A stretch of DNA of 22,859 bases from Macrostomum lignano. Taxonomy: Eukaryota. The position numbers and the translations under genes were made by a program. The notes under the pieces are model-generated. The model had not been told where the DNA came from. It saw only the letters and a list, made by a program, of their open reading frames with translations, and searched no databases. The stretch covers positions 96,566-119,424 of the forward strand of contig NIVC01003100.1 in the NCBI GenBank assembly GCA_002269645.1, given 5' to 3'. This document shows, piece after piece, positions 665-19,429 of this stretch (position 1 is its first letter; the number at the start of each line of letters is the position of its first letter).

Positions 665-902
665 CTCGCATTCCCCCCCCCCTACACGTTTTTTGCACCC
701 CAGCTTAAAAATTGGCGCCCCTCATACTCAGTTTGGCGTCCCAAACTTGGACCGCCCCCAAAAGCCATCGCTATGCTATCGATAGTGAACAGGTATTTCT
801 TGTCAGCTAAACTAATAGATGCTTTTTAATCTTAGTGTTAGCAATCATAAAGCGTTTAGTCACAAAATGCCGCGTTTTTTCATTTCATTGAAAAACTTCG
901 TT

Positions 903-908
903 TTTATT
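903..908 (-). terminator. Possible polyadenylation signal of the YR gene
   Basis: AATAAA on the minus strand ~150 nt after the YR stop codon; the region is AT-rich so it may be chance. Confidence 0.3.
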
Positions 909-1056
909 TTATGGATCGATCGTGACTGGAGTGCAGGTTCGCGTGCTTTTAGCTCTCCAAGGGCTGCAAAACCAGGTACTTTGCCGTCTTCGATCTTTTC
1001 TATCGCGCGGTTAATTGCCTCATTTTCGTCTTTGTTCCACGCAATGTGCTCCTGAA

Positions 1057-3802
1057 TTAGTTTTTTCTTGACTTCTGAAATGGATTGAAGTAACTGAAAT
1101 CAACTTTGGTTTTTTTCTTCCCCCCAGTTCCCATTTTGTCCTTACCTTCCGAACTAGGAGCGCTTTTGTCCTTCTGTGGGTCCTCTTGTCCGGGTCCTGG
1201 CTCGCTTTTGTCCTTCTGTGGGTCCTCTTGTCCGGGTCCTGGCTCGCTTTTGTCCTTCTGTGGGTCCTCTTGTCCGGGTCCTGGCTCGCTTTTGTCCTTC
1301 TGTGGGTCCTCTTGTCCATGTCCTGGCTCGCTTTTGTTATTAGTCGTTGTTGCTGTCGCACCCTTTGGCTTAGTCGTCCTTCGAATCCGCCTTTCGTTTG
1401 CTCTAGCTTTCTGCACTTTTCTGGTTTTTTTCGTCGGTTGGTAGTCTGAATCGTCTTTGTCTACTTCGCTTTCATATTCATCTGAGTCGAGCACAGCTAA
1501 TCGATTCTTCTTTTTTTCGACTTGCTTGATGGACAGGGGGGCTCCGCGAAAGTCGACAGAACCTTCGTGATAAATTGACTCGTCCTCAAATTCCTTAGCT
1601 TGGATACGAGCTCCATTATTCTCAGGAGGTGCTTGACTCTTTTGGTCACCACGTTTTAATTCTCGAGCCTGTGAGCCTATTGAGGCTTCCACATCACCGG
1701 ATTCGTTCAAATCATCTTTTTTTGCATCTGACTTATCGTCAATGTCATAGTCAATTTCGATGTCGTTAACATCAATCTCTTCGATAGTTTTGCCTTTAAG
1801 CTGGTCGAATCTACCGGCCTCGATAGCCAGAAGTAGCTTGCCTACTTTAGCAAGCTCAATAGTGTTTTCATGCAATCGATAGAAATTATGGTGAACATTA
1901 AGGCTATGTCCAAGATGGTTGGAGAGCCATCCGAGCTCATTTTCTCTCATTTCAAGGATCTGAGAGACAGTGGCAATGTATTTTCGAAGGTTGGTCGAAG
2001 ATAGACGAGCAGGGAACTGGAGCCCTTGACAACTGGAGACAACATTTGTGCGCGCAACGAATGGGGATATATATCCCAAACTTCCACTACTGCAGAATAC
2101 GTAAGGACTTGAAGCGTGGTGTCTTGTGCGAATGAGCTCATCGATAATTTCAGCAATCTCATTCGAAACTAGCAGAGGAACCGGTCGCTGTGCTCTCTTA
2201 CCTCGAACATTAACGATAGTCAACCGGTAAAGCATTTGCTTTTCTAATTCACTTAGCGCAGATAATGTTGTATCATCAACATCTTTGCATGATCTTGCTT
2301 TCTGCCACGCCGAAACTCGCAGCTTGAAGGGCTCAGACGCCCGGCGCTTGTTGAAAATAGACAAACGAATCGCAACATATTCGGCCACCTCTTTCCAGTA
2401 AGAAGGGCTGCTTTTTAGCTTTTCCGTGTCGATGTGGCTTAAATATTCGTTAATGTGCTTCGTGATTAACTGAATGTCGCTAGTTAACGGCAATGTCTGA
2501 CCCTTGTCAATTTTTCTTTCTTTCAAGGACAAAAGTGCAATCGAAGATATTTTACGGCTCCATGATGTTTCATACAGAGTGATGAAGTTGCGTCGCTCCT
2601 GAGCTACTTCGGGCATTTCGCATTTCAGGGCACGTACTAACGACAGTTCAGCAGCCAGCTTCAGAGAAAACCCGCACTTAAGTGCCATCGAAGGAATAGA
2701 AAAAGAATCGCAAATCTGAGCATCTTCTTGGGCCGTAAATTTCGCTACATTTCGAGTCGCCTCAACAACTAAATCAAATGATGATGGCTTCAGCAAATCG
2801 TCAAGACAAGCGCTGGGATCGCCCATAATTTCACGAGCTGACATAAGTAATCTCGACATTTCACGCATTTTCGCAGTTACAATTTTCTTTCCTGTCTTTC
2901 CGGATGTAAAACCTTCATAGGCGTAGTAGCCAAGTTCCATTATAAGCTTGTCTGATTGAGCTACTTTGCTACATGAGTCTACCTTCATTTTATTAATAAG
3001 TTCAATAAATTTGGACGGATATTTCGCCGGAAAGCATGATGCAAGGAGAAGGCAGCGTCCTGCACTGACAGCTTCTGTGCGCCTGTTCAAATCGCTGACA
3101 TTTACGACAAAGCGGCAGCGCTGAACATGCCTGCTTAACTCAGTTTTACGAAAAAATCCAAAACAGTGAATGCACGGCAAATACGAAACTTCATTATCTT
3201 TCATGTCCGAAGAACTTCTTTCGCGACACACAATGATTCCTCCCTCCTTCTCCTGGGTCATAACTTTTATGTTATGTTCGTAATCTCCTCGAAAGCGCAA
3301 GCGATCAAATTCCTGGTCATATTCTGAAAAAAATATGAACAGATAATTATTTTCAGACAAACTAAATACTACTATGAGGACCTACATAAAAAACTTATTT
3401 CAAAAACTTACTATCAGACTTAGGATTAAATGCGAGGGCGCGCTGTACACACATTTCCTTCGAGTGTGCCCGAATAAGATGCCTTCTGATCTTCGAAAAC
3501 ATTTCTCCGCAAAAGAGGCAGCAATGCCTCTTCTTCTCATGCTTAAGTTTCGCTTGGGACGGAACTAAATCATCAGACCAGACTTCCTCCAAATAATAAT
3601 CTTCATCACCATCTTCTTCCTCGAGTTCAGCGTCCTCAGGTAGTATACTCGTATTTGCAATGTCCCTTAAAGCTGAGTGCAACCTTCCACCAAGAATATC
3701 GTCTACTACCGTAAGATTTTTGTCCACAAACGAATCATCATCTACTAAATCAAAAGCAACGTCTATCCTTGCTTTGGTAGCATCGCCGTCTCTATCGCAA
3801 AC
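1057..3802 (-). CDS. Tyrosine recombinase (Crypton-type metazoan family) with N-terminal Zn-binding motifs; exons 3802-3412 and 3323-1057 (885 codons), first exon not adjacent
   Basis: YR catalytic-type motifs IFNKRRASE (R), RGKR (K), STNLRKY (xxxR), NHLGHS (H), NFYR (Y). Cys/His motifs CLFC..RHLIRAH and CIHC..RHVQRC. The 88-nt intron 3411-3324 (GTAAGT..TTTTTCAG) joins the two ORF-track ORFs in frame. Acceptor TTTATTTTTCAG|GTT at 3802. Confidence 0.85.
1161..1335 (-). repeat. 42-bp coding tandem repeat (~4 copies, DKSEPGPGQEDPQK) in the YR C-terminal tail
   Basis: Directly visible; period 42. Confidence 0.95.
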
Positions 3803-3879
3803 CTGAAAAATAAACAGCAAGTTACATAGCTTAGATATACTCATTAGCTCATTTTTCCTGAAAAGTCAATAAGTCAATT

Positions 3880-4055
3880 CTCTGAAGCACTACAACGCGA
3901 TAATCTAAGTCAAAACGTTTAGACACCCTTCATTTAGACAGTGCAGACGTTCTGATCTCATGGTGGACCAGCTCGCTTTCTAAGAATCTGTTCTGATTGC
4001 ATTCCAAGAAACGGAAACATTCCCGCACTAAACTTTCAAGACAGCTCTGAGAGCC
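3880..4055. other. Module B' (diverged B copy directly upstream of YR)
   Basis: 3941-4055 essentially identical to the B modules; 3880-3940 diverged (TTCTCTGAAGCAC versus TTCTCTACAGCAC). Confidence 0.85.
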
Positions 4056-4304
4056 AAAGCCCCAAACAGACTGAGAGAGCTGCTTTAGTTGTGTCTGTAG
4101 GTTAGGTGGACCACCTTCCAAGAGTCAAAGCCCCAAACAGACTGAGAGAGCTGCTTCAGTTGTGTCTGTAGGTTAGGTGGACCACCTTTTAAGAGTCAAA
4201 GCCCCAAACAGACTGAGAGAGCTGCTTCAGTTGTGTCTGTTCTGTAGGTTAGGTGGACCAGCTTCTCTACAGCAATTGAGTTGCAGCTAGCTACTTTGAG
4301 ATCA

Positions 4305-4544
4305 TCAAGCGAAACTCACTTTTCTGGACTCGGTGTCGACGGATTTGCCAGTAGACCGACGATTTTCACCAGGCGATGCGGCCTTCTTCGAGGCTGGAGT
4401 AGCGCCTGCATCCGCGGTAGCGTTGTGCGACTGAGCGCCTTCATCAAGGCGTGATGCAGAGCGCGAACGGCTTCGCGATTTCCGCCCTCTTTTTGAGGCA
4501 CCAGTGCGTTCGATTTGGCGGGAACGAAATTCGACCTCAGGCTC
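4305..4544 (-). CDS. Cassette A1 (alpha type): ATG-less terminal exon, 79 codons, basic RS-rich peptide ending RKVSFA
   Basis: Acceptor TTTTTATTCTCTAACTTCCTAG|GAG; open frame EPEVEFRSRQIERTGASKRGRKSRSRSRSASRLDEGAQ...SPGENRRSTGKSVDTESRKVSFA*. Same frame as the DBF4 C-terminus. Not in the ORF track because it lacks a start codon. Confidence 0.6.
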   Translation of the reverse strand, partial: EPEVEFRSRQIERTGASKRGRKSRSRSRSASRLDEGAQSHNATADAGATPASKKAASPGENRRSTGKSVDTESRKVSFA

Positions 4545-4961: not shown

Positions 4962-5140
4962 CTTCTCTACAGCACTACTAGGCGATAATCTGAGTCGGAA
5001 TGCCTTGAGACCATTCATTTACACAGTGCAGACGTTCTGATCTCATGGTGGACCAGCTCGCTTTCTAAGAATCTGTTCTGATTGCATTCCAAGAAACGGA
5101 AACATTCCCGCACTAAACTTTCAAGACAGCTCTGAGAGCC
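4962..5140. other. Module B1 (non-coding or micro-exon module)
   Basis: Begins CTTCTCTACAGCAC; near-identical to 8288-8468, 11602-11782 and 12845-13024. Confidence 0.85.
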
Positions 5141-5815
5141 AAAGCCCCAAACAGACTGAGAGAGCTGCTTCAGTTGTGTCTGTAGGTTAGGTGGACCACC
5201 TTATAAAAGTCAAAGCCCCAAACAGACTGAGAGAGCTGCTTCAGTTGTGTCTGTAGGTTAGGTGGACCACCTTTTAAGAGTCAAAGCCCCAAACAGACTG
5301 AGAGAGCTGCTTCAGTTGTGTCTGTAGGTTAGGTGGACCACCTTATAAAAGTCAAAGCCCCAAACAGACTGAGAGAGCTGCTTCAGTTGTGTCTGTAGGT
5401 TAGGTGGACCACCTTATAAAAGTCAAAGCCCCAAACAGACTGAGAGAGCTGCTTCAGTTGTGTCTGTAGGTTAGGTGGACCACCTTATAAAAGTCAAAGC
5501 CCCAAACAGACTGAGAGAGCTGCTTCAGTTGTGTCTGTAGGTTAGGTGGACCACCTTATAAAAGTCAAAGCCCCAAACAGACTGAGAAAGCTGCTTCAGT
5601 TGTGTCTGTAGGTTAGGTTGACCACCTTTTAAGAGTTAAAGCCCCAAACAGACTGAGAGAGCTGCTTCAGTTGTGTCTGTAGGTTAGGTGGACCACCTTC
5701 CAAGAGTCAAAGCCCCAAACAGACTGAGAGAGCTGCTTCAGTTGCGTCTGTTCTGTAGGTTAGGTGGACCAGCTTCTCTACAGCAATTGAGTTGCAGCTA
5801 GCTACTTTGAGATCA

Positions 5816-6055
5816 TCAAGCGAAACTCACTTTTCTGGACTCGGTGTCGACGTATTTGCGAGTAGACCGACGATTTTCACCAGGCGATGCGGCCTTCTTC
5901 GAGGCTGGAGTAGCGCCTGCATCCGCGGTAGCGTTGTGCGACTGAGCGCCTTCATCAAGGCGTGATGCAGAGCGCGAACGGCTTCGCGATTTCCGCCCTC
6001 TTTTTGAGGCACCAGTGCGTTCGATTTGGCGGGAACGAAATTCGACCTCAGGCTC
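5816..6055 (-). CDS. Cassette A2 (alpha type) terminal exon
   Basis: Near-identical to A1; acceptor and frame intact. Confidence 0.6.
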   Translation of the reverse strand, partial: EPEVEFRSRQIERTGASKRGRKSRSRSRSASRLDEGAQSHNATADAGATPASKKAASPGENRRSTRKYVDTESRKVSFA

Positions 6056-6386
6056 CTAGGAAATTAGAGAATAAAAAGACAAGTCAAAGTCGGAAGCTTA
6101 AATTCAAAACCGCTGCCGTGTATCCGTGTGACCCTCAAACAGACTGAGAGAGCTGCTTCAGTTGTGTCTGTAGGTTAGGTGGACCACCTTTTAAGAGTCA
6201 AAGCCCCAAACAGACTGAGAAAGCTGCTTCAGTTGTTTCTGTAGGTTAGGTGGACCACCTTATAAAAGTCAAAGCCCCAAACAGACTGAGAGAGCTGCTT
6301 CAGTTGTGTCTGTAGTTTAGGTGGACCACCTTTTAAGAACTTCTCTACAGCAATTGAGTTGCATGCAGCTAGCTATTTTGAGATCA

Positions 6387-7430
6387 TTAAACGAAACTCA
6401 CTTTTTTGGACTCGGTGTCGACGTATTTGCGAGCAGACTGACGATTTTCGCCAAGCGATGCGGCTTGGCGTCTATCACCGTCATTTTGCTGAAATATGTT
6501 AGGTAGTGCTTTCGAATCCGGTTTTTTCGTGTCATGATGTGTCATAGGAGCGGTAGCCTTTTGAGTCGCTTCATTTAGGGCGCTGTCTAGCGTCGGAAGA
6601 GTTGAAATGATTTGGTCGATTTCAGTAAAATTTTTTTTATTCGAAACGAAATCTTGGTGCTTTTGGCTTAATGTTATGTGCTGATTAAAGTCGTCGTAGG
6701 CTTCGCGACAGTTTTCACACCGACCTTTCCGTTTTTCTTTGCCGTCAGGCTTTTGACGATTTTTTTCATCGTTATTATTAGCCCTTGGGTTTGCAAAAAT
6801 GTCGACGACATCAATGTTATCTTTGAAGATTGGTCTCAGCAAATGCTGGGCATCCGTAACAACAACGGCCGGTGGGGTCAAATTCCGATCTTCTTCGGCA
6901 AACCTCCCTGAAGAAATAGTTTTCTGGCACAGCTCGTGTTGAGAAACTTGATCGCGAATTCGATCTCGAAATATTGCCGGAGTGTAGACAGGTATTTGCA
7001 GCAAGCGAGCTTTCGTCAAAATATCTTCGAATGTTTTGACAATTCTGCATTGCGAACTCGAAGTTTGCGTAACGGCTCTCTGCTGCATGGTGAAACCCCT
7101 AGAAAACTCCGAAAAAGATTGTTTAGCTTCAATGGAGACAGCGGAATCGTCAGCGATGATTAAATCAACCTGGAAAAGCAAAAAATACGAGCCCATAGCT
7201 ACAAAAAATCTATCAACGTCTCTAATCTGCCCTATTAACAAGCAACAAACAAAAACAACGAATGCATTGCAAAAACTACACACCTCATTTGAAAAAAACG
7301 AAGCAACGCTTCCGCCATAATAGACGACGGCAGATTCCAGCTTCTTTTGTCGCTTTTGACTTTCGCCGTACAGAAAAAAAACTCGCTTCCCTCGAAGAGA
7401 ATCCAATGTAAACTGCTCGACCAAACAGCC
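6387..7430 (-). CDS. DBF4: Compact DBF4-like protein (Cdc7 kinase regulatory subunit); exons 7430-7284 and 7169-6387, 309 codons, no own ATG
   Basis: N/BRCT-like motif LRGKRVFFLY..LESAVVYYGGSVASFFSNE|VDLII, restored by removing a 114-nt GT..CAG intron. M motif LTPPAVVVTDAQHLLRPIFK. C-motif zinc finger KGRCENCREAYDDFNQHITLSQKHQDF..IDQII. Acceptor TTTTATTTTAGTTTCTACAG|GGC. Recognised from memory of DBF4 motifs. Confidence 0.85.
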   Translation of the reverse strand, partial: GCLVEQFTLDSLRGKRVFFLYGESQKRQKKLESAVVYYGGSVASFFSNEVCSFCNAFVVFVCCLLIGQIRDVDRFFVAMGSYFLLFQVDLIIADDSAVSIEAKQSFSEFSRGFTMQQRAVTQTSSSQCRIVKTFEDILTKARLLQIPVYTPAIFRDRIRDQVSQHELCQKTISSGRFAEEDRNLTPPAVVVTDAQHLLRPIFKDNIDVVDIFANPRANNNDEKNRQKPDGKEKRKGRCENCREAYDDFNQHITLSQKHQDFVSNKKNFTEIDQIISTLPTLDSALNEATQKATAPMTHHDTKKPDSKALPNIFQQNDGDRRQAASLGENRQSARKYVDTESKKVSFV

Positions 7431-7924
7431 CTGTAGAAACTAAAATAAAAAAAATTTCTCACATATTACTCCATTACGGAAACGCCTAAACAGTACATAA
7501 GTTTTGACTGTAGGTTAGGTGGACCACCTTCTAAGAGTCAAAGCCCCAAACAGACTGAGAGAGCTGCTTCAGTTGTGTCTGTAGGTTAGGTGGACACCTT
7601 ATAAGAGTCAAAGCCCCAAACAGACTGAGAGAGCTGCTTCAGTTGTGTCTGCAGGTTAGGTGGACCACCTTATAAAAGTCAAAGCCCCAAACAGACTGAG
7701 AGAGCTGCTTCAGTTGTATCTGTAGGTTAGGTGGACCACCTTCCAAGAGTCAAAGCCCCAAACAGACTGAGAAAGCTGCTTCAGATGTGTCTGTAGGTTA
7801 GGTGGACCACCTTCCAAGATTCAAAGCCCCAAACAGACTGAGAGAGCTGCTTCAGTTGTGTCTGTAGGTTAGGTGGACCAGCTTCTCTACAGCAATTGAG
7901 TTGCAGCTAGCTACTTTGAGATCA

Positions 7925-8155
7925 TCAAGCGAAACTCACTTTTCTGGACTCGGTGTCGACGGATTTGCCAGTAGACCGACGATTTTCACCAGGCGATGCG
8001 GCCTTCTTCGAGGCTGGAGTAGCGCCTGCATCCGCGGTAGCGTTGTGCGACTGAGCGCCTTCATCAAGGCGTGATGCAGACGCAGAGCGCGATTTCAACT
8101 TTTTCGAAGCCTCAGACTGGTCGAGCTCAGGAGAACGAAATTCGACCTCGGGCTC
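7925..8155 (-). CDS. Cassette A3 (beta type) terminal exon, 76 codons
   Basis: Different middle segment (EPEVEFRSPELDQSEASKKLKSRSASASR) but the same acceptor, frame and tail. Confidence 0.6.
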   Translation of the reverse strand, partial: EPEVEFRSPELDQSEASKKLKSRSASASRLDEGAQSHNATADAGATPASKKAASPGENRRSTGKSVDTESRKVSFA

Positions 8156-8287: not shown

Positions 8288-8468
8288 CTTCTCTACAGCA
8301 CTACTAGGCGATAATCTGAGTCGGAATGCCTAGAGACCATTCATTTACACAGTGCAGACATTCTGATCTCATGATGGACCAGCTCGCTTTCTAAGAATCT
8401 GTTCTGATTGCATTCCAAGAAACGGAAACATTCCCGCACTAAACTTTCAAGACAGCTCTGACAGCCAA
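8288..8468. other. Module B2
   Basis: Copy of B1. Confidence 0.85.
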
Positions 8469-8578
8469 GGCCCCAAACAGACTGAGAGAGCTGCTTCAGT
8501 TGTGTCTGTAGGTTAGGTGGACCACCTTTTAAGAGCTTCTCTACAGCAATTGAGTTGCAGCTAGCTACTTTGAGATCA

Positions 8579-8809
8579 TCAAGCGAAACTCACTTTTCTG
8601 GACTCGGTGTCGACGTATTTGCGAGTAGACCGACGATTTTCACCAGGCGATGCGGCCTTCTTCGAGGCTGGAGTAGCGCCTGCATCCGCGGTAGCGTTGT
8701 GCAACTGAGAGCCTTCATCAAGGCGTGATGCAGACGCAGAGCGCGATTTCAACTTTTTCGAAGCCTCAGACTGGTCGAGCTCAGGAGAACGAAATTCGAC
8801 CTCGGGCTC
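8579..8809 (-). CDS. Cassette A4 (beta type) terminal exon
   Basis: Frame and acceptor intact. Confidence 0.6.
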   Translation of the reverse strand, partial: EPEVEFRSPELDQSEASKKLKSRSASASRLDEGSQLHNATADAGATPASKKAASPGENRRSTRKYVDTESRKVSFA

Positions 8810-9420
8810 CTAGGAAGTTAGAGAATAAAAAGACAAGTCAACGTCGGAAGCTTAAATTCAAAACCGCTGCCGTGTATCCGTGTGACCCTCAAACAGACTG
8901 AGAGAGCTGCTTCAGTTGTGTCTGTAGGTTAGGTGGACCACCTTCCAAGAGTCAAAGCCCCAAACAGACTGAGAGAGCTGCTTCAGTTGTGTCTGTAGGT
9001 TAGGTGGACCACCTTCCAAGAGTCAAAGCCCCAAACAGACTGAGAGAGCTGCTTTAGTTGTGTCTGTAGGTTAGGTGGACCACCTTTTAAGAGTCAAAGC
9101 CCCAAACAGACTGAGAGAGCTGCTTCAGTTGTGTCTGTAGGTTAGGTGGACCACCGTATAAAAGTCAAAGCCCCAAACAGACTGAGAAAGCTGCTTCAGT
9201 TGTGTCTGTAGGTTAGGTGGACCACCTTCCAAGAGTCAAAGCCCCAAACAGACTGAGAAAGCTGCTTCAGTTGTGTCTGTAGGTTAGGTGGACCACCTTA
9301 TAAGAGTCAAAGCCCCAAACAGACTGAGAGAGCTGCTTCAGTTGTGTCTGTAGGTTAGGTGGACCACCTTTTAAGAGCTTCTCTACAGCAATTGAGTTGC
9401 AGCTAGCTACTTTGAGATCA

Positions 9421-9651
9421 TCAAGCGAAACTCACTTTTCTGGACTCGGTGTCGACGTATTTGCGAGTAGACCGACGATTTTCACCAGGCGATGCGGCCT
9501 TCTTCGAGGCTGGAGTAGCGCCTGCATCCGCGGTAGCGTTGTGCAACTGAGAGCCTTCATCAAGGCGTGATGCAGACGCAGAGCGCGATTTCGACTTTTT
9601 CGAAGCGTCAGACTGGTCGAGCTCAGGAGAATGAAATTCGAACTCAGGCTC
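9421..9651 (-). CDS. Cassette A5 (beta type) terminal exon
   Basis: Frame and acceptor intact despite several substitutions. Confidence 0.6.
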   Translation of the reverse strand, partial: EPEFEFHSPELDQSDASKKSKSRSASASRLDEGSQLHNATADAGATPASKKAASPGENRRSTRKYVDTESRKVSFA

Positions 9652-9922
9652 CTAGGATGTTAGAGAATAAAAAGACAAGTCAACGTCGGAAGCTTAAATT
9701 CAAAACCGCTGCCGTGTATCCGTGTGACTAGGGATGTCGATTCCCCGGGGAATATTCTTATCGGGGACCCGGGGAATTTACTGTCATTCCCGGGGACCCC
9801 GGGGAAAATTAAAAATAAGTTAAAAACGGCGAATAACTTTGGCTTAGATCTTAAATGGCATTTTAAACTTTGATTTTAGCTTTAGACTACATGTTCAAGG
9901 CGCAAGGGTAAAAACTAAACAA

Positions 9923-10260
9923 TCTCTACCTATAAAAATGAAAACTCTGTCTGCGTGTGTGTCTGTGTACAAATTACTTTGCTATGGACTCCCAAGTCCC
10001 AAACCGCTCAACCAAATTACGATAACTTTTGCACCCGCCCTAAATTTACTACGGAGAATGTCTTAGGCTACCTTAAAATTTCCTAAACTCAAGTCTTCCT
10101 ACCTAAAAGTGCAAAAACTGCTCAAAATGCGCGATTTTTTACTAAATCCTCCATAGCGCCGCTCCACTTCTACCGATCCTTTCAACCGTGTAAAATTTCA
10201 AGTCTCAAAGTTAATCCTGAAAGGCGCTGTGCACTTTTAAAATTAACTGTTTTTTCAGCG
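9923..10260 (+). mobile_element. Possible non-autonomous Helitron-like fragment nested in the hAT; right end not defined
   Basis: A|TCTCTACCTATAAAAATGAAAAC followed by a (TG/TCTG) tract and CCGCTCAACCAAATTACGATAACTTTTGCAC resembles animal Helitron 5' ends from memory. No 3' hairpin/CTRR end found. Confidence 0.35.
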
Positions 10261-10944
10261 AGGCAACCACCCCAACCTCCGCCCGCCTGCCTCTCTTTCC
10301 CGATCTGGGCAAAGGAGTGTAAATAGGTTTAAAATGACTAACTTTCGGCTGTCATAAGCTTGCTCCACGTGAAGCGATTGACTTCAAATTTGACGCAATT
10401 CTTTATTGACTCATTCTCTATCTAAATGTAAAGTCTCAACTCTGTATCTCAATCAGGACAGAAACTGTAAGCATGTGAAGTTTGTCTGCTTTTTCTGTTG
10501 TTTGTGCCGCTCACTCATTCCACCAGCCCAGACCCCCAGACGAAGGGTCAGGCGATTGGGCTTAATGTACATAGCGAATGTACAGTGTTTTGGAATAACT
10601 TTTTAATAGCCTTCTCTGTACCCGCGAGTGGAGAGGCGCAGAGAGGAGAGACAGTTTAGCCAGAGATTCAAAACACTGTCCTCTGTATAGACAAGTCTTC
10701 AGGCTCAGTTATAACAGTAGATGGCAAATCAAGAGTCAAGACAACGTGGGATGGTTTGTAAAAATAGCGAAAAATTAATGAATAACTGATTACAATGCAA
10801 TCCTACTAAATTAGTTAGTTACAGCATGAAGCTTTTAACATTAAAATTCGCATAAGATCACTTTAAAATTTAAATGGCTCCTAAGAAATGCCTATATCCC
10901 TTGGTTGTAGTAGGGATGTCGACCCCGGGGAGCTTGTGTTTATT

Positions 10945-11064
10945 TAAAACTGTATTTGACAACGTGGCATCATCAAATCGTGCGTGCACCTTTGTCAGAA
11001 GGAGTCCAGACTGTGGTGTGGAGGCGGAAAATGCATGCTCAGCAGCTACGCTCGTGGGAGGATA
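10945..11064 (-). pseudogene. Remnant of hAT transposase C-terminal dimerisation domain
   Basis: YPPTSVAAEHAFSAS..GLLLTKVHARFDDATLSNTVL resembles the hAT PxTSxxxERxFS..GLxxTKxRxRL motif. Confidence 0.75.
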
Positions 11065-11601
11065 ATTAATGAATGAGACCGTTTTTATAATCAAAATTTT
11101 TATTTCTAGCAGACATTGTCCTTGTCTAATAGGGAGCATTTTGTTATTGTATGACACCCCCATGCGTCCGCAGGACGCAGCGCTGTGCCTGCGTCAAATT
11201 CCGTCAAGCCGTCAACGCAGACCAACACAGTAGTCAGTAAAGCTTCTTTTTCCTGACGGGTTTTTAGGTGAAATTTGCTTGATTGAAGGACTCGTAGTGA
11301 AAAAACATTCAAACGTGTGTTGCGTTTGAAATTTTACATTGAGATAAGCAGTTATGCGGTAAGAAAAGCATAGACAGAGTTTCAATCAGCTCTCTGTAAA
11401 TTATTTTCTTATTTTAATGGCAAAAATTAGGTTAAAAATGCATTTTTCTCCCGGGGTCCCCGGTTCAATTCCCCGGGGAATATTCCCCGACAAGCTCCCC
11501 GGGGCCCCGGGGAGCACTCCCCGGGGTCGACATCCCTACGTGTGACCCTCAAACAGACTGAGAGAGCTGCTCCAGTTGTGTTTGTAGGTTAGGTGGACCA
11601 C

Positions 11602-11782
11602 CTTCTCTACAGCACTACTAGGCGATAATCTGAGTCGGAATGCCTAGAGACCATTCATTTACACAGTGCAGACATTCTGATCTCATGGTGGACCAGCTCG
11701 CTTTCTAAGAATCTGTTCTGATTGCATTCCAAGAAACGGAAACATTCCCGCACTAAACTTTCAAGACAGCTCTGAGAGCCAA
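11602..11782. other. Module B3
   Basis: Copy of B1. Confidence 0.85.
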
Positions 11783-12003: not shown

Positions 12004-12301
12004 CATACATGCGCAACCTCCAAAATTCGGTCGGCCGTGCGACTTAGTTTTAACAAAAATGCGACGTAGTTTTTGGCCAAAAATGCGACTTACATGGAAA
12101 GAAACCCTAAAGCAAAATTAACGCAACTTCGGGTAAACGGCAGGAGTAACTATGACTGTCTTATTGAGCCAAAATGCCTCGTCAGCTACTTAGTACTACT
12201 ACTTCGGTGTTTTTTCGGGTGGGCATATTTGCGACTTCCTTGGTTGGCCGCCAAATCGGTCGGCCGGATCGGCCGACTCGGCCAACTGTTGCGCATGTAT
12301 G
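12004..12301. mobile_element. 298-bp MITE, probably hAT-type, inserted in one 71-bp repeat
   Basis: 14-bp TIR CATACATGCGCAAC / GTTGCGCATGTATG; 8-bp target duplication AGCCCCAA at 11996-12003 and 12302-12309. Confidence 0.93.
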
Positions 12302-12472
12302 AGCCCCAAACAGACTGAGAGAGCTGCTTCAGATGTGTCTGTAGGTTAGGTGGACCACCTTCCAAGATTCAAAGCCCCAAACAGACTGAGAGAGCTGCTT
12401 CAGTTGTGTCTGTAGGTTAGGTGGACCAGCTTCTCTACAGCAATTGAGTTGCAGCTAGCTACTTTGAGATCA

Positions 12473-12712
12473 TCAAGCGAAACTCACTTTTCTGGACTCG
12501 GTGTCGACGGATTTGCCAGTAGACCGACGATTTTCACCAGGCGATGCGGCCTTCTTCGAGGCTGGAGTAGCGCCTGCATCCGCGGTAGCGTTGTGCGACT
12601 GAGCGCCTTCATCAAGGCGTGATGCAGAGCGCGAACGGCTTCGCGATTTCCGCCCTCTTTTTGAGGCACCAGTGCGTTCGATTTGGCGGGAACGAAATTC
12701 GACCTCAGGCTC
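12473..12712 (-). CDS. Cassette A6 (alpha type) terminal exon
   Basis: Near-identical to A1. Confidence 0.6.
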   Translation of the reverse strand, partial: EPEVEFRSRQIERTGASKRGRKSRSRSRSASRLDEGAQSHNATADAGATPASKKAASPGENRRSTGKSVDTESRKVSFA

Positions 12713-12844: not shown

Positions 12845-13024
12845 CTTCTCTACAGCACTACTAGGCGATAATCTGAGTCGGAATGCCTAGAGGCCATTCA
12901 TTTACACAGTGCAGACATTCTGATCTCATGGTGGACCAGCTCGCTTTCTAAGAATCTGTTCTGATTGCATTCCAAGAAACGTAAGCATTCCTGCACTAAA
13001 CTTTCAAGACAGCTCTGTGAGCCA
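12845..13024. other. Module B4
   Basis: Slightly more diverged copy of B1. Confidence 0.85.
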
Positions 13025-13104
13025 AAGCCCCAAACAGACTGAGAGAGCTGCTTCAGTTGTGTCTGTAGGTTAGATAGGCCTTGCAATTAGCTATTTTGAG
13101 ATCA

Positions 13105-13278
13105 TCAAACGAAACTCACTTTTCTGGACTCGGTGTCGATGGTTTTGCGAGCAGACTGTCGGTTTTCACCAGGCGATGCGGCCTTCTTCGATTTTGCAGT
13201 GGCTTTTTGCGTCGCAGTTTTTTTAGGTTTTACCTTAGGCTTAGGCTTGGCGTCCTTTTTGTTTTTTTTTCGGGTCAT
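13105..13278 (-). CDS. Module H: short Lys/Ala/Pro-rich ORF (57 aa) with the shared tail
   Basis: MTRKKNKKDAKPKPKVKPKKTATQKATAKSKKAASPGENRQSARKTIDTESRKVSFV*; a candidate acceptor at 13307 is out of frame as assembled. Confidence 0.45.
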   Translation of the reverse strand: MTRKKNKKDAKPKPKVKPKKTATQKATAKSKKAASPGENRQSARKTIDTESRKVSFV

Positions 13279-13511: not shown

Positions 13512-14378
13512 CGTTGGGGTTGATCTTTCCTCCTAAGTGTTAACCAGCCAATTATAGAAAGGGAGGTCTGTCTGTCTGTCTGTTCCAACCCTATACTCCT
13601 GCACATGTGTTTACGTGGACCAAACAGACAGTTAGTGTTAGGCTGACTGTTAATGCGTTCTTAGTTTTACTGGGACCGCAATCAAGTCGATCTTTTGCTA
13701 GAGATTCAGAGACCCAATTTCTAGCTAAAAGGCCCTTCTTAATTGCGTCCTCTTGATTTTGCATGTACATGTATGAATGGCCCTTTTCAATTAGGTAAAT
13801 TGCATCTTCAACTTTGCACTTAAAAGGCTGCAGCTTAGGATCTTCTTCTTCAAGATATCCCATAGTGTTTGCGATAGAGTTGGCAAGCACTTAATTTATG
13901 AAGTTGCTATTAATTTTTTCTTGTGTAATGGTAGAGCCTCAGAAATTTTCATTTACACAGTGTGGCTATCAAGGACCACTGGGAGTTCTTGAGAAGTCAT
14001 TGAAGAATATTGTTTAAGCTTCACTTAAATATCTTTCTTGTCTCGGAGTCTTTATCGCTTGATCTGGTTAGTAAATTGGATTTCTTTACATTGGTGTCTT
14101 ACTCTGTGAGTCTCTGCTCAGAGTACGATACCGGAATTGCTGGAACTGAGCTAATTAAATGGAGTTTAAAGTTTACTATATAAAATTCATTTCGCATACG
14201 AGGTTGTCAGAATTTTAAATTAACCTGCGTACCTACTTGAATGTCAAAGAATTTTAACGCATATTGTTTTAAGGCCAGTGGCGGTCATAATATGATGTTA
14301 ACATAGCCATTTGTTCGTAAGGTAATGATATGTAAAAAATTCAGTTTTGCATCGAATCTATGCTTAATAACTGCTATA

Positions 14379-14720
14379 CACAAACAGACACAAACAGACA
14401 CAAACAGACACAAACAGACGATTTTCGAAAAATTTTCTGAAATTTTTCGGTTTACGTGGACCAGACTCGCTCGGTTTAGGTAGACCAGGCTGGAGGTCCA
14501 GCTAAACTGAAATGCGAATAACTTTGGAAAAAACCATGCTAGACATTCCAAAATTGCTAGAGCCCTTCTTGACCCGCCTGACATTAATTTGAGATCCTCA
14601 TCAACGTCTTAACCCCACCAGAGACAAAATTATTTGGTGGTCCACCTAAGTGGTCTACCTACACCGGGTGGTCCAGCTAACGAGGCTACTGAACTTCCAA
14701 AAAGTCCACGTAAACACACA
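14379..14720. repeat. Cluster of repeat-derived motifs: 4x CAAACAGACA plus forward and inverted TTA(C/G)(G/C)T(G/A)GACCA boxes
   Basis: Forward boxes at ~14450-14490; inverted boxes at ~14497, 14636-14650, 14652-14662, 14669-14681, 14704-14718. Confidence 0.75.
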
Positions 14721-14734
14721 GACAGTAGAACAGG

Positions 14735-14735
14735 C

Positions 14736-14788
<53 letters not shown>

Positions 14789-14789
14789 G
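14735..14789. repeat. (GACA)n microsatellite
   Basis: Directly visible. Confidence 0.97.
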
Positions 14790-14831
14790 GCAATGATGGC
14801 AAACATGCCACACAGACAGACAGCACCCCAG

Positions 14832-15212
14832 AAACCCTGGCCCCGCACCAGATACCTGGCCTTAAATGGCTCGCTAATCCTGGCTGTGCTGGAGCCGGTC
14901 AGCCAGAAGCGCACCCTGCCATCAGCCATCGTTATCGTCCGCGGCCCCTTCGGCCGCCAGGTCTGGCAGGCGGAGATGCGCGACGCGCCCAGACAGCAGC
15001 GGCCCCCGGCAGCGCCGCAGTCGGCCAGGCGGCCGCCACCCGATCCGTCTCTGCTGCCCTATTGGTGCTACACTGAGGGGCGCCGGGCGCCGCCGTATTT
15101 TCCTGCCGAGCCGCCTGGCCTGCCGGCTGTGCGCGCCGACGCCTCGGTGCCGACGCTGGCTTCGGTGACGCCAAATAGCGCCGAGGTGCTGCGGCTGATG
15201 GCGCAGGCGCGC
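14832..15212 (+). CDS. RALGAPB: RalGAP subunit beta-like host gene, internal exon; both splice boundaries uncertain
   Basis: RYLALNGSLILAVLEP..PSAIVIVRGPFGRQVW..ADASVPTL resembles RALGAPB RYFVLDNSVILAMLEQ..PSVTVLVRGMSGRLAW..ADLSIPDL as remembered; GC-rich. Confidence 0.75.
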
Positions 15213-15304
15213 GTGCCAAAGCGGCTACCCTGTGAGCGATTGATTTCTATTCGATTCCAGCATGCCTGAGTAGCTTCAATAGAAAGAGCATTGAGTTTTC
15301 AGTG

Positions 15305-15905
15305 TTTCCTATGGAAACTACTGTGCTTCCTATGGAAACTACTGTGCTTCCTATGGAAACTACTGTGCTTCCTATGGAAACTACTGTGCTTCCTATGGAA
15401 ACTACTGTGCTTCCTATGGAAACTACTGTGCTTCCTATGGAAACTACTGTGCTTCCTATGGAAACTACTGTGCTTCCTATGGAAACTACTGTGCTTCCTA
15501 TGGAAACTACTGTGCTTCCTATGGAAACTACTGTGCTTCCTATGGAAACTACTGTGCTTCCTATGGAAACTACTGTGCTTCCTATGGAAACTACTGTGCT
15601 TCCTATGGAAACTACTGTGCTTCCTATGGAAACTACTGTGCTTCCTATGGAAACTACTGTGCTTCCTATGGAAACTACTGTGCTTCCTATGGAAACTACT
15701 GTGCTTCCTATGGAAACTACTGTGCTTCCTATGGAAACTACTGTGCTTCCTATGGAAACTACTGTGCTTCCTATGGAAACTACTGTGCTTCCTATGGAAA
15801 CTATTGTGCTTCCTATGGAAACTACTGTACTTCCTATGGAAACTACTGTACTTCCTACGGAAACTACTGTGCTTCCTATGGAAACTGATGTGCTTCCTAT
15901 GGAAA
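15305..15905. repeat. 21-bp intronic minisatellite (CTATGGAAACTACTGTGCTTC), ~28 copies
   Basis: Directly visible. Confidence 0.97.
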
Positions 15906-15968
15906 AACCCCTGCATCCTATGGCCTGGATTTGGGCCATTTCTAGTCACGTGACGATTGGTTAATCAG

Positions 15969-16505
15969 CCCTGTCCGATTCCTCCGCCCGAAGGCCCCGA
16001 AACGCCGCAGTGCCGTCCACCCGCCTCGGCCAAAGAGTTCCAACCGGCCAGGCTCATCCTCACCCAGCTCGGCCTGCTGGACATCGCCTGCACTTTGGAC
16101 TCTTCTACCCAGGAGTTCTTCGACCAGCTGAGCGAACTCGACGGCCTCCCAGTGCGCAGCCTGCACCCGGCCGCGCTGTACTTTGTGCCCCGCGGAGCCT
16201 GCGCCAGCGACCCCGACCGCCTGCTGGCTGTTAGCTCCGCCGCCGCCGCCGCGTCCGCCGATTTCACCAGCTTCTGCCACGGCCTCGGCTGGGCCCCGGC
16301 CAATCTGCCCGGCAATGTCGCCTACTGGTCGGACGCCGTGGCCGAGGTTGTGTTTCACAGGCCGAGCGGCCGTCCGCTTGAGCAGAGCCAGCCGGTGCTG
16401 GTCTGGCTGGAGGACGCCGAGGACCGGGCCGCTTTTCCCACCGATGCGCTGTGCCCGCGAGCCGATCCGCTGGTGTTCGTGGCCTGCCGAGACCGCCTGC
16501 TCAAG
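15969..16505 (+). CDS. RALGAPB: RalGAP subunit beta-like, penultimate exon
   Basis: CRPPASAKEFQPARLILTQLG..LDSSTQEFFDQLSELDGLP..FCHGLGW..YWSDAVAEVVF..LVWLE matches RALGAPB [65 protein letters not shown]| acceptor, AAG|GTGAGC donor, 179 codons. Confidence 0.85.
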
Positions 16506-16552
16506 GTGAGCTGCTCTGGCGTGCGGCCTTTGTTTGATCTTTATCTATGCAG

Positions 16553-17350
16553 GCTAGATTAGCAATCCATTCTCATGTTAGCTAGATTAGCAATCCATTC
16601 TATGTTAGATAGATTAGCAATCCATTCTATTTCTGCATCCATGATGGGCTAGATTAGCAATCCATTCTATTTCTGCATCCATGATGGGCTAGATTAGCAA
16701 TCCATTCTATTTCTGAATCCATGATGGGCTAGATTAGCAATCCATTCTATTTCTGAATCCATGATGGGCTAGATTAGCAATCCAGTCTATTCCTCCATCC
16801 ATGATGGGCTAGATTAGCAATCCATTCTATTTCTGCATCCATGATGGGCTAGATTAGCAATCCATTCTATTTCTGCATCCATGATGGGCTAGATTAGCAA
16901 TCCATTCTATTTCTGCATCCATGATGGGCTAGATTAGCAATCCATTCTATTTCTGCATCCATGATGGGCTAGATTAGCAATCCATTCTATTTCTGCATCC
17001 ATGATGGGCTAGATTAGCAATCCATTCTATTCCTCCATCCATGATGGGCTAGATTAGCAATCCAGTCTATTCCTGCATCCATGATGGGGTAGATTAGCAA
17101 TCCAGTCTATTCCTCCATCCATGATGGGCTAGATTAGCAATCCATTCTATTTCTGCATCCGTGATTGGCTAGATTAGCAATCCATTCTATTTCTGCATCC
17201 GTGATGGGCTAGATTAGCAATCCAGTCTATTCCTCCATCCATGATGGGCTAGATTAGCAATCCATTCTATTTCTGCATCCATGATGGGCTAGATTAGCAA
17301 TCCATTCTATTTCTGCATCCATGATGGGCTAGATTAGCAATCCATTCTAA
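16553..17350. repeat. 40-bp intronic minisatellite (GCTAGATTAGCAATCCATTCTATTTCTGCATCCATGATGG), ~19 copies
   Basis: Directly visible. Confidence 0.97.
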
Positions 17351-17372
17351 TTAACCAGTCCCAATCCCTCAG

Positions 17373-17726: not shown

Positions 17727-18049
17727 TTGATTCTCCTGATCATTTTATAGCTCTAGTTTTACTACGCCCGCCCCCGCATTCCGCACTAATCACTCTGATG
17801 ATGATTAACGCGCTCAGGGTCTGAATTTGTTGCTCTATTTTTATCATTTAACAATCCCCACTGATGGTTGATGATTCCCGCCTGTACGCTTTGTTGGCTA
17901 ACCATATCATTATTCATCTAAGAAGTCGCTGCTCTTACTGATGGCTGATTGCCTAATTTTAACCGTCTATTGAGGTTCAATCGGTTTATTAGGTTGTTGC
18001 CTTCAGCTAACATTCGATATTCACTACTATGTGTCTGGTGTTGTTTTCT

Positions 18050-19347: not shown

Positions 19348-19348
<1 letters not shown>

Positions 19349-19429
<81 letters not shown>

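Follow-up and report, generated by a model that had tools for sequence, protein, structure and literature searches.

Does the compact DBF4 gene that lies between tandem repeats in the genome of the flatworm Macrostomum lignano travel as the cargo of a mobile element, or is it a part of some larger gene? The gene was found within a stretch of 22,859 nucleotides, the whole of which is called the window here. A sequence-only reading of the window had taken it for a DBF4 captured as a cassette in a mobile element. In our preferred reading, to which we give a probability of roughly 0.45, a DBF4 paralogue is instead spliced in frame into a Crypton-like tyrosine recombinase gene and the two are carried on one mRNA. 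The DBF4 block and its surroundings are as follows.

7431..7499, minus strand: unique leader (the end of an outron or intron), read directly as a T-rich tract followed by a CTACAG acceptor
7284..7430, minus strand: DBF4 exon a, 49 codons, phase 0, with the start of the BRCT-like motif N; from the ORF and public models
7170..7283, minus strand: DBF4 intron, 114 nt, GT..AG, in frame and stop-free; read directly, and spliced out in the public models
6402..7169, minus strand: DBF4 exon b, 256 codons; from Pfam, alignments, structural model and fold search
Within exon b, minus strand: the rest of motif N to ~6909, motif M at ~6881..6795, motif C at ~6734..6597, then the tail
6340..6470, minus strand: segment common to the A modules and the putative first exon (both given below); from BLAST and alignment

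Read without splicing, the minus-strand ORF runs over 7424..6387 (345 codons) and closes with a TAA at 6389..6387. With the intron removed, as it is in the public models (FFSNE|VDLII), the DBF4 has 305 codons (7430..6402, minus strand) and carries motif N, a probable motif M and motif C, in canonical order. The frame is intact and the gene is a genuine DBF4, as the sequence-only reading had it. Of the two profile searches proposed with that reading, the one with Pfam zf-DBF matched motif C at E=5.4e-16 (58.8 bits, cut-off 24.8), and the one with Dfp1_Him1_M gave no match in the DBF4 block. A sequence search of the PDB returned yeast and human DBF4 chains. In alignments with other DBF4 proteins the CCHH ligands C200, C203, H213 and H220 of the finger are invariant and all zinc ligands are kept, and the AlphaFold model superposes on human DBF4 (6ya8_B) at 1.4 A over 45 columns in Foldseek. 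Motif N is matched weakly by Pfam BRCT (E=0.0012, under the cut-off), and residues 9-136 form a confident BRCT-like fold in the model (pLDDT 75-88). The best Foldseek match of the model is yeast Dbf4 in the DDK-MCM complex (7p5z_G, E=5.5e-6), and the crystal structures of Dbf4 BRCT/motif N 5t2f, 3qbz and 3oq4 are matched as well. The candidate motif M reads LTPPAVVVTDAQHLLRPIF against the consensus L.PPFIKVED.S..YRP when aligned with 10-14 other DBF4 proteins; the invariant D155 and the nearly invariant P149 and P162 are kept. The model is of low confidence in this region, and motif M is assigned from sequence alone.

A redundant DBF4 drifting towards a pseudogene in a repeat-rich intron, with its open frame and the gene models that join it to its neighbours being incidental, is a most improbable explanation. 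It could draw on the near-identical copy of the locus in a public assembly (L001), in which the A-run matching 6638 is shorter by 1 nt and the frame is shifted, on the public model P0169, which differs from the window at the same run, and on P0002, where an isoform lacks the zinc finger and goes out of frame. However, no stop interrupts the 915-nt coding sequence, either in the window or in two UniRef models, and the zinc ligands, D155, P149 and P162 have all been kept. The window and L001 copies differ at homopolymers only, and homopolymer errors are a plausible source of 1-nt differences in long-read assemblies.

The window does not hold the only DBF4 of its host. A second gene (Mlig017237) encodes a DBF4 of 594 aa that is ~30% identical and lies among ordinary host genes. 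Its intron (locus L003) interrupts the coding sequence at the same position and in the same phase (FFSKQ|VD, FFSNE|VD in the window), and the two paralogues were therefore duplicated at the DNA level; the earlier proposal of a copy made as DNA, not as a processed retrocopy, agrees with this. The zf-DBF score of the other paralogue is 46.3 bits. The window DBF4 (58.8 bits) is thus the more family-typical of the two, so that either could be the ancestral copy and the word 'captured' calls for caution. With ~30% identity the divergence was long ago, and a score above that of the paralogue after such a time is not what decay would leave. GC3 is 0.42 in the DBF4 block, 0.40-0.43 in the recombinase and 0.64 in the other DBF4 paralogue, which favours a fusion. 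Compact DBF4 proteins of 216-322 aa, ending soon after motif C, also occur in other organisms, and the long DBF4-related proteins (P0076 and seven others) have DBF4 domains only; no further fusion of DBF4 with a recombinase was present among 129 DBF4-related representatives, which weighs against a fusion here. It may also be observed that so family-typical a sequence suits an essential host DDK activator better than an accessory domain of a transposon, which speaks against a fusion.

Both ends of the DBF4 block are splice sites. The ORF has no ATG of its own and starts exactly at a 3' splice site (7430), in phase 0, an in-frame TAG at 7442..7440 closing the frame upstream of exon a. Three public models (P0001, P0002 and P0169) start exactly there, with GCLVEQ, and the 594-aa paralogue likewise lacks an ATG and is preceded by a TTGCAG acceptor. 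The spliced leader of M. lignano ends in ATG and is joined at acceptors of the form [T/C]TNCAG (PMC8629364), with which the CTACAG before exon a agrees. The 3' end of the ORF is a consensus 5' splice site, and the stop at 6387 is reached only if this site is not used; in that case four further codons give a free DBF4 of 309 aa. The shared segment 6340..6470 takes in the last 23 DBF4 codons (AASLGENRQSARKYVDTESKK; 69 nt) and, beyond 6402, 62 nt of intron that open with the GTGAGT donor, and it recurs in a repeated exon module; by BLAST it is 88-90% identical to 4262-4382, 5773-5893, 7882-8002, 8536-8656, 9378-9498, 12430-12550 and 13082-13182. The start at a 3' splice site without an ATG, the end at a 5' splice site and the shared tail had all been overlooked in the sequence-only reading. 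DBF4 ends in the donor and tail of repeated linker exons, and the frame continues beyond. Probably it is not a self-contained cassette but lies inside the transcription unit of the recombinase, as an in-frame fusion or at least for co-expression.

The array in which the block is set contains six copies of one exon of 72 or 75 codons (A), five copies of a non-coding module (B) and two transposons with terminal inverted repeats (TIRs), separated by a 71-bp repeat (R); DBF4 is the only distinct gene-like unit within it.

13120..13278, minus strand: putative first exon with its own ATG, 53 codons, basic, with the same tail and GTGAGT donor
12488..12712, minus strand: linker exon A6, 75 codons
9436..9651, minus strand: linker exon A5, 72 codons
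8594..8809, minus strand: linker exon A4, 72 codons
7940..8155, minus strand: linker exon A3, upstream of DBF4, variant of 72 codons, donor phase matching that of the DBF4 acceptor
7500..7886, no strand: repeat R, 71 bp, 5.5 copies, in the intron upstream of the DBF4 block
6136..6338, no strand: repeat R, 71 bp, 2.9 copies, in the intron downstream of the DBF4 block
5831..6055, minus strand: linker exon A2, 75 codons, phase 0-0, joined to the DBF4 exon in P0001 and P0169
4320..4544, minus strand: linker exon A1, 75 codons, followed in P0003 by the recombinase ORF
3878..4050, minus strand: non-coding module B, the copy adjoining the recombinase exon
4963-5139, 8289-8465, 11603-11779 and 12846-13022: other copies of module B

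The six A exons are all open (225 or 216 nt), with a dN/dS of 0.4-0.5 between the two variants. A TATA-like GGGATATATAATG lies ~160 nt upstream of the putative first exon and could be part of a promoter. Rfam, run on the whole window, gave no match to an RNA family, which means that neither R nor B is a known RNA gene, and Pfam gave no match for a GC-rich ORF at 15957-16562 or for the other window ORFs that were searched.

The R repeats do flank DBF4 on either side, as had been described. A reading that builds on this would make the locus an active integron-like element, with R as recombination site and DBF4 as a promoterless captured host gene that might push S phase or help to replicate excised circles. 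In bacterial integrons a tyrosine recombinase gene stands next to an array of repeats and unique segments, and here too a recombinase gene, with intact catalytic motifs, adjoins one end of a one-orientation array in which repeats alternate with unique segments. DBF4 has linker exons of a single family on either side, as if it had been inserted, and this fits an insertion into a pre-existing array. The number of modules differs between the two copies of the locus, and the motif GGTCCAC[CG]TAA(A)C of R is also present at both flanks of the recombinase loci. Nevertheless, we consider such an element improbable. A, B and DBF4 meet R at points that differ in phase within the R unit: the left junctions come after GTCTGTTTG in A, after GGGCTTTG in B and after CCTACAG in DBF4, and the right junctions differ too. 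Copies of one module family have identical junctions, and are duplicates rather than independent captures; the modules have splice sites and preserve the reading frame. Two other stretches that separate R arrays turned out to be ordinary TIR transposons, with target-site duplications of 8 bp. The M. lignano genome is rich in tandem arrays within introns, and the other DBF4 gene is no exception. Unlike an integron, the locus has no attC-like sites or constant junctions, and its segments are exons with introns or transposons, the repeated ones being duplicates. The idea of integron-like cassettes bounded by R sites is not supported. Of the broader claim, a cassette in a mobile element, one part is retained, namely that DBF4 is embedded in the transcription unit of a transposon-type recombinase; the cassette is not, the segments being exons with introns whose junctions vary in phase. 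As a candidate recombinase site R was rejected in its own right: it contains just an 11-nt palindrome (GGTGGTCCACC) of 5-1-5 form, unlike the paired arms around a spacer of recombinase-type sites, and its junction positions vary. We would instead regard the 71-bp R arrays as intronic tandem repeats that may drive unequal crossing-over of exon-plus-intron modules, and not as recombination sites bounding cassettes.

The recombinase gene occupies the end of the array.

3412..3802, minus strand: recombinase exon 1, acidic region and first zinc finger, after an TTTTTCAG acceptor, phase 0
1146..3323, minus strand: recombinase exon 2, second zinc finger, tyrosine-recombinase core (R, K, R, H, Y) and a 14-aa coding repeat
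860..1074, minus strand: last recombinase exon, Myb-like C-terminal tail, stop TGA at 862..860

By sequence, whether as a single sequence or as a profile of 19 sequences, the recombinase matched nothing in Pfam or the PDB, and its identification is thus by fold comparison only: the top five PDB matches in Foldseek are XerA (5hxy) and the S. aureus integrase 3nkh, with probability 1.0. The residues R472, K520, R591, H614 and Y626 are conserved in the family, with the histidine of HxxR replaced by S/T throughout, and the motifs FNKRRxGE, GKRxRxVP, LRKYIAT, HLGH and YYR are kept in 18 of 19 homologues. Pfam searches of the recombinase ORFs, the gene models and the window ORFs that were tested revealed no reverse transcriptase, RNase H or methyltransferase nearby. 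The family occurs in bivalves, beetles and flatworm, a patchy spread among animals. M. lignano itself has only two paralogue groups, each at apparently one syntenic locus. The window and L001 loci have the same flanks, and among the M. lignano copies found there was no empty site, second genomic context, circle junction or terminal structure for the unit, which also counts against an active element. In another organism, a 5.2-kb unit with the homologue P0009 has two different right flanks (L005 and L006), and this difference is what an active element would lead one to expect. The 125-nt direct repeats that flank the distant homologue L005 were considered as element ends and set aside; they look like a dispersed repeat, with a third copy nearby.

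Canonical splicing of the window yields one open frame of 1,382 codons, with no stop, in the order DBF4, two linker exons, two zinc fingers, Crypton-like tyrosine recombinase and Myb-like tail; adding the putative first exon and A6-A3 extends it to 1,726 codons. The public gene models cover parts of this frame. P0001 and P0169 are 100% and ~99.7% identical to the window protein, continue from ...DTESKK into exon A and end at the end of exon A2. The NCBI model PAA93368.1 (P0003) runs in frame from the DBF4 tail through four A exons into the recombinase ORF; that it begins at MTHHD is due to a 1-nt homopolymer difference in that copy. The WormBase model P0170 joins the first exon and A exons to DBF4 exon a at the junction ...DTESRK|GCLVEQ; it is evidently a chimera, and a garbled one. 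P0004 covers only the recombinase. That public models are truncated or chimeric at this locus is due to homopolymer differences and to the repetition of exons, and those models that join the parts were produced by automated annotation of a genome that is polyploid and rich in repeats. On the minus strand between 6402 and the recombinase stop, AATAAA occurs only inside the recombinase coding sequence, at 2989-2994 and at 908..903, the latter ~45 nt before the stop; its absence between DBF4 and the recombinase is weak evidence, only about one being expected there by chance.

An operon-like arrangement without fusion could also account for these observations, though we hold it to be somewhat unlikely. 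Trans-splicing of a single pre-mRNA at 7430 and at 3802 would then produce one mRNA for DBF4, with or without linker, and a separate one for the recombinase. DBF4 would be a normal, possibly the main, activator of Cdc7 in dividing stem and germ cells, and the downstream recombinase gene, transposon or domesticated, would borrow its expression. Both exons start in phase 0 after [T/C]TNCAG-type acceptors, so that the AUG of the leader would work for each, and the missing ATG and TTGCAG acceptor of the other DBF4 paralogue follow the same pattern. Trans-splicing affects 30% of M. lignano genes and as many as 85% of neoblast genes, and 15% of genes belong to operons (PMC8629364). Three models begin exactly at the DBF4 acceptor, P0004 has the recombinase alone, and the window DBF4 is the better conserved of the two paralogues. 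On the other hand, once spliced, the DBF4 frame stays open as far as the recombinase, no canonical poly(A) signal separates the two, P0003 links A exons in frame to the recombinase ORF, and the DBF4 exon has the donor and tail of internal linker exons. Two further observations speak against a fusion: the recombinase exon at 3802 follows its spliced-leader-type acceptor TTTTTCAG in phase 0, so that two cistrons are possible; and P0001 and P0169 stop at the end of A2, P0004 holds the recombinase alone, and the models that do join the parts are automated, P0170 among them garbled.

In the preferred reading, that of an in-frame fusion, the two-exon DBF4 block would lie within a minus-strand transcription unit of ~12.5 kb (from ~13.3 kb down to 0.86 kb), whose 3' half would encode the Crypton-like tyrosine recombinase. 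A spliced leader joined at the DBF4 acceptor would supply the AUG, and the GTGAG donor common to the repeated linker exons would splice DBF4 into two disordered linker exons and then into the recombinase. The fusion may be the main product. Through motifs M and C the DBF4 module would bind Cdc7, and its BRCT-like motif N may dock on chromatin or MCM; the recombinase might thereby be tied to licensed or firing replication origins, or gated to S phase. The paralogue P0005 has a chromodomain at the place that corresponds to DBF4, followed by repeated exons, zinc fingers and recombinase in a complete ORF from Met; its repeated exons are separated by intronic arrays of 83-85 bp, and the last recombinase exon of the window is homologous to its C-terminus. 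This Chromo paralogue adjoins or sits within an ankyrin-repeat gene on two contigs. Its chromodomain may be a different chromatin-targeting module at the same place. More speculatively, and in our view rather unlikely, a catalytically competent Crypton-type recombinase and a complete Dbf4 module would form one polypeptide tethered to Cdc7 and to MCM-loaded origins, with an N-terminal module (DBF4 or chromodomain) made interchangeable in this flatworm lineage by exon shuffling in intronic repeat arrays, and would carry out replication-coupled or origin-targeted recombination.

With Dbf4/ASK, the regulatory subunit of Cdc7 (DDK), of which second paralogues such as vertebrate DBF4B/DRF1 exist, the window DBF4 shares the order N, putative M, CCHH zf-DBF C and the fold. 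It differs in having no start codon of its own, a 3' end replaced by the linker-exon tail and donor, a frame that reads into a recombinase gene, and, as counted on alignments, a finger spaced H-x6-H and not H-x5-H. A search of the literature brought up nothing relevant on DBF4 together with a recombinase or transposon, on a recombinase element of Macrostomum or under the gene identifier. The integrases of chromoviruses, which are of the DDE class, carry a C-terminal chromodomain as a targeting module; this would be a functional analogy only, of a chromatin-reading module that chooses the place or time of integration, the enzyme class being different and their module C-terminal. Starships, the fungal cargo-carrying tyrosine-recombinase transposons, span tens to hundreds of kb between defined termini and bear a DUF3435 'captain' at one end (PMC10104507). 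They are the nearest precedent for host-type gene cargo on a eukaryotic tyrosine-recombinase element, but neither their size nor a DUF3435 captain or defined termini were seen at the M. lignano locus. Cryptons are DNA transposons with a tyrosine recombinase only and no reverse transcriptase, and those of animals have no terminal repeats (Kojima & Jurka 2011, PMC3212892). The window recombinase resembles them in its long ORF, its fold, the residues R, K, R, H and Y, the lack of a reverse transcriptase found nearby and the patchy occurrence in animals; unlike them, it has no sequence match in Pfam or the PDB, S/T for the HxxR histidine, two N-terminal zinc fingers and a Myb-like tail, and occurs as two paralogue groups, each at apparently one syntenic locus. 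Crypton-derived host genes, in which DUF3504 is fused to other domains (KCTD1 isoform b, ZMYM2/3/4, QRICH1), have lost most of the catalytic tetrad (PMC3212892). As in those genes, exon shuffling would here have linked a Crypton-type recombinase domain with domains of host proteins, at a locus that is fixed and of low copy number, but the catalytic residues are kept and the partner is DBF4.

To our knowledge, when and where transposon recombinases act is understood in a few systems only, for instance through chromodomains and the host tethering factors of integrases. For annotators, the locus is one where public models are truncated or chimeric. If DBF4 and the recombinase are only co-transcribed, a transposon-type gene would be making use of a proliferation gene's spliced-leader and operon machinery. 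If the fusion is real, exon shuffling would have brought together a core cell-cycle gene and a gene of a transposon with both of them still intact, which is rare, and a recombinase with its own Dbf4 module would link transposition or recombination directly to origin firing, a link that would be testable in a regenerating animal with manipulable stem cells.

A minus-strand open reading frame at 7424..6387 belongs to a DBF4 paralogue, which lies between two arrays of a 71-bp repeat (R):

7500-7886, R array, 5.5 copies of the 71-bp repeat, on one side of the DBF4 block
7430..7284, minus strand, DBF4 exon a, read in context
between 7284 and 7169, minus strand, DBF4 intron of 114 nt (GT..AG), which stays in frame by chance
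7169..6402, minus strand, DBF4 exon b, read in context
6136-6338, R array, 2.9 copies of the same repeat, on the other side

The product has 305 codons and carries three DBF4 features. A zf-DBF zinc finger is detected by Pfam (E=5.4e-16, 58.8 bits) and can be aligned to the yeast and human DBF4 chains. The BRCT-like N-terminal domain is weak by Pfam (E=0.0012); the AlphaFold model is confident across it, and its best fold matches are 7p5z_G (yeast Dbf4 in the DDK-MCM complex, E=5.5e-6), Dbf4 BRCT/motif-N crystals and human DBF4. In the motif-M stretch, the family alignment shows that D155, which is invariant, is kept, as are P149 and P162, which are nearly so. The sequence-only reading had described DBF4 motifs N, M and C in about 310 codons flanked by R repeats, and that observation is confirmed as written.

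The protein is 100% identical to the Macrostomum lignano UniRef entry P0001. It is not the only DBF4 of its host, since an exhaustive HMMER search found a second (P0031 and P0158, 594 and 597 aa), with about 30% identity to it overall and 41% across motifs M and C, encoded at locus L003 between a ferlin-like and an Ariadne-type gene. The intron falls at exactly the same codon boundary in both genes (FFSKQ|VDCLI in the second DBF4, FFSNE|VDLII in the window), and the duplication was therefore DNA-based, as had been proposed from the retained intron. Derived features in common, for example CENC..AY.DFN.H and NF.EID, make the two copies look like lineage-specific paralogues. Judged by sequence scores, the window's DBF4 is, unexpectedly, the more family-typical of the two: its zf-DBF score is 58.8 bits vs 46.3, and across the aligned core it outscores the second DBF4 against 9 of 9 outgroups, which had themselves been retrieved by searching with the window's protein. 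A 29-30-bp tandem repeat (GCTGACTGTTTGAGCATCATGAGGTGAAT) fills the intron of the second gene (L003 10178-11054), so introns full of repeats may be widespread in this genome and not a speciality of the recombinase locus.

The DBF4 reading frame has no ATG and an in-frame TAG upstream, and starts in phase 0 directly after ...TTTTATTTTAGTTTCTACAG. The spliced leader of M. lignano ends in ATG, and the trans-splice acceptor motif is [T/C]TNCAG (PMC8629364). Three public models start exactly at the DBF4 acceptor, and the second DBF4 gene has the same start architecture, with no ATG of its own and an acceptor directly before it. The frame ends ...ESKK|GTGAGT, the consensus donor of the species, and translation would meet the stop at 6387 only after four codons of unspliced intron. 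The linker-exon module A, of which the window has six, shares 88-90% identity at its 3' end with a segment made up of the last 69 nt of the DBF4 exon, its donor and 62 nt of the intron that follows; this segment also matches a putative first exon at 13278..13120. Every A module contains one exon, of 75 or 72 codons, that is open with phase 0-0 boundaries, and dN/dS between the two A-exon variants is 0.4-0.5.

Public models P0001 and P0169 join the DBF4 exon to exon A2, P0170 runs from exon 1 through A exons to DBF4 exon a, and P0003 (NCBI PAA93368.1) links the DBF4 tail, by way of four A exons, to the large ORF downstream. The start of P0003 inside the DBF4 tail is explained by an A-run 1 nt shorter in L001, the other copy of this locus, which gives a stop just upstream. 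We spliced the window manually at such junctions:

7430..7284, 7169..6402, 6055..5831, 4544..4320, 3802..3412, 3323..1146 and 1074..860, minus strand, exons of the manual splice
2989-2994 and 908..903, minus strand, AATAAA, both in recombinase coding sequence, the latter about 45 nt ahead of the stop at 862..860

The splice yields 1,382 codons with zero stops (1,726 with exon 1 and A6-A3). From the DBF4 exon to the stop, minus-strand AATAAA does not occur outside recombinase coding sequence, which is weak evidence. As far as these junctions can be read from DNA, the DBF4 block is wired into a larger gene, and the best reading is a leader-capped mRNA encoding a DBF4-linker-zinc finger-recombinase fusion (probability about 0.45). 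The main rival is an operon-like unit giving DBF4 and recombinase as separate proteins; the recombinase exon at 3802 is also in phase 0 after a leader-type acceptor, and the window's DBF4 resembles a well-kept host gene, and we regard this rival as possible, if rather unlikely. Less likely than either, and highly improbable, is a decaying DBF4 duplicate.

Model P0002 (window 6485-6725) uses an alternative donor just ahead of the zinc finger (KRKGR|) and the acceptor ...ATATTTCAG|CAAAATG, so that the finger is omitted and both the tail and the A exon after it are read in a shifted frame; the model may represent an isoform that is either regulated or non-productive.

L001 (NIVC01000029.1, a 27-kb stretch of the public assembly) is 99.6-99.9% identical to the window, repeat-module numbers excepted. 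The coding parts of DBF4 and recombinase differ only by 1-nt homopolymer length changes (6638, 1066, 1125) and one substitution. In L001 the homopolymer changes break the DBF4 frame and alter the recombinase C-terminus, and they account for the unusual N-terminal (MTHHD) and C-terminal (TNSGAHCVEQRRK) sequences of PAA93368.1.

On the minus strand, from 13.3 to 3.8 kb, the window reads exon1-B-A-U2-B-U1-A'-A'-B-A'-DBF4-A-B-A-B-recombinase, with R arrays between and B a non-coding module; L001 reads exon1-B-A'-B-U1-A'-B-A'-B-A'-DBF4-A-A-B-A-A-B-B-recombinase. Modules of one type have identical junctions and so are duplicates, the phase at which a module joins R varies between types, U1 and U2 are ordinary TIR transposons with 8-bp target-site duplications, and intronic tandem arrays are also present in the second DBF4 gene. 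On these grounds an integron-like cassette array is rejected; the array behaves as a higher-order tandem repeat of exon-plus-intron units, altered by unequal crossing-over. DBF4 occurs in it once, as a stable unit with the A' subfamily on one side and the A subfamily on the other, and the linker exons on both sides with the borrowed 3' end suggest that it entered a pre-existing array. Of the proposed cassette captured in a mobile element, the integron-like form thus falls to the junction and transposon evidence, and "capture" in a loose sense is plausible. An active element carrying DBF4 as cargo is improbable, less so than a decaying duplicate, and ranks behind both the fusion and the operon-like unit. 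GC3 is 0.42 in the DBF4 block, 0.40-0.43 in the recombinase and 0.64 in the second DBF4, a codon composition that agrees with long co-residence of DBF4 and recombinase.

The two transposons and a recurrent motif were also recorded:

9729-11538, U1, 1.8 kb, TIRs TAGGGATGTCGA..., rich in CCCCGGGG, 8-bp target duplication GTCACACG, in the intron part of module A5
12004-12301, U2, 298-bp MITE-like, TIRs CATACATGCGCAAC..., 8-bp target duplication TTGGGGCT, inside an R unit
window 29, 13621, 14462-14495 and 14670; L001 18003 and 18149; L002 9135, 17463 and 17595, GGTCCAC[CG]TAA(A)C at recombinase-gene flanks

U1 is also in L001 and no transposase ORF was recognised in it; U2 is missing from the otherwise 99.6%-identical L001 and is thus an insertion difference between the copies. 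Relatives of both lie in L002, a locus of the recombinase paralogue P0005 (U1, 24779-25862, 77-81%; U2, 7741-8037, 90% identity). The R unit and the 83-bp L002 repeat both have this motif as their core. Single copies also stand on either flank of the recombinase genes, nearly always oriented like the gene and in many cases beside (GTCT)n or GTCTGTTTG microsatellites; in the control locus L003 (22.7 kb) there is only one. The motif may be a dispersed repeat or a site bound by a protein.

The downstream ORF has no Pfam or PDB sequence match. Its AlphaFold model is confident at residues 100-660, and all five of the best PDB fold matches are tyrosine recombinases, namely XerA (5hxy) and an S. aureus integrase (3nkh). 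Homologues of 550-940 aa occur in bivalves, beetles and further assemblies, some in many near-identical copies, and conserve FNKRRxGE, GKRxRxVP, (S/T)TxLRKYIAT, HLGH and (F/Y)YR. These motifs supply the catalytic Arg, Lys, Arg and His and the nucleophilic Tyr, while S/T stands where the classical tetrad has its first His. Pfam finds no reverse transcriptase in the recombinase ORFs, the gene models or the other window ORFs scanned, and Cryptons (PMC3212892), which also lack one, are therefore its closest known kind. In another organism a 5.2-kb recombinase unit has two different right-hand contexts, so the family is or was mobile.

The last recombinase exon (860-1074, minus strand), absent from public models P0003, P0004 and P0170, encodes ...WNKDENEAINRAIEKIEDGKVPGFAALGELKAREPALQSRSIHKIKTKFFNEMKKRGIL; it is homologous to the P0005 C-terminus and to the family consensus W-x3-E...PGK, and resembles a Myb/SANT-type tail, though one with no Pfam match. 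A 42-bp tandem repeat in the ORF (1161-1337, minus strand; 4.2 copies, 98% matches) encodes SEPGPGQEDPQKDK x4. The intronless homologue P0009, at L005 in another organism, has a direct repeat of about 125 nt on each side (7539-7663 and 12874-12999; 90% identity, 5.3 kb apart); with a weaker third copy close by, a dispersed repeat seems likelier than element termini.

The upstream third (14378-22856) is almost all unrelated tandem arrays:

15302-15905, 21 bp x29
16610-17349, 40 bp x18.5
18050-18920, 36/76 bp
19350-20026, (CTGA)169
20464-22056, 26 bp x61, strong G-over-C skew
22056-22856, 21 bp x39

Between arrays, a 201-codon ORF (15957-16562, plus strand, about 57% GC) without a Pfam match is a candidate exon of an adjacent host gene on the opposite strand.

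Only two recombinase paralogue groups were found in M. lignano. P0005, 50% identical to the window's recombinase, is a complete ORF with a chromodomain, two repeated exons, zinc fingers, recombinase and Myb-like tail, and its exons are also separated by intronic tandem arrays (83-85-bp units). Two of its genomic copies, L002 and L004, are located next to or inside an ankyrin-repeat gene, and their placements look syntenic. The chromodomain takes the position held by DBF4 in the window gene.

In the literature searched, DBF4 is nowhere described as fused to a transposon recombinase or as carried alongside one, and no second DBF4-recombinase fusion was seen among the DBF4 relatives examined. Crypton domains joined to host domains are known in the Crypton-derived host fusions KCTD1, ZMYM2-4 and QRICH1, which, unlike the window's recombinase, have lost the catalytic residues. 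In the fusion, the DBF4 module would recruit Cdc7 or dock on MCM/chromatin and would in this way couple the recombinase to replication, and the chromodomain of P0005 may likewise couple the recombinase paralogue to marked chromatin.
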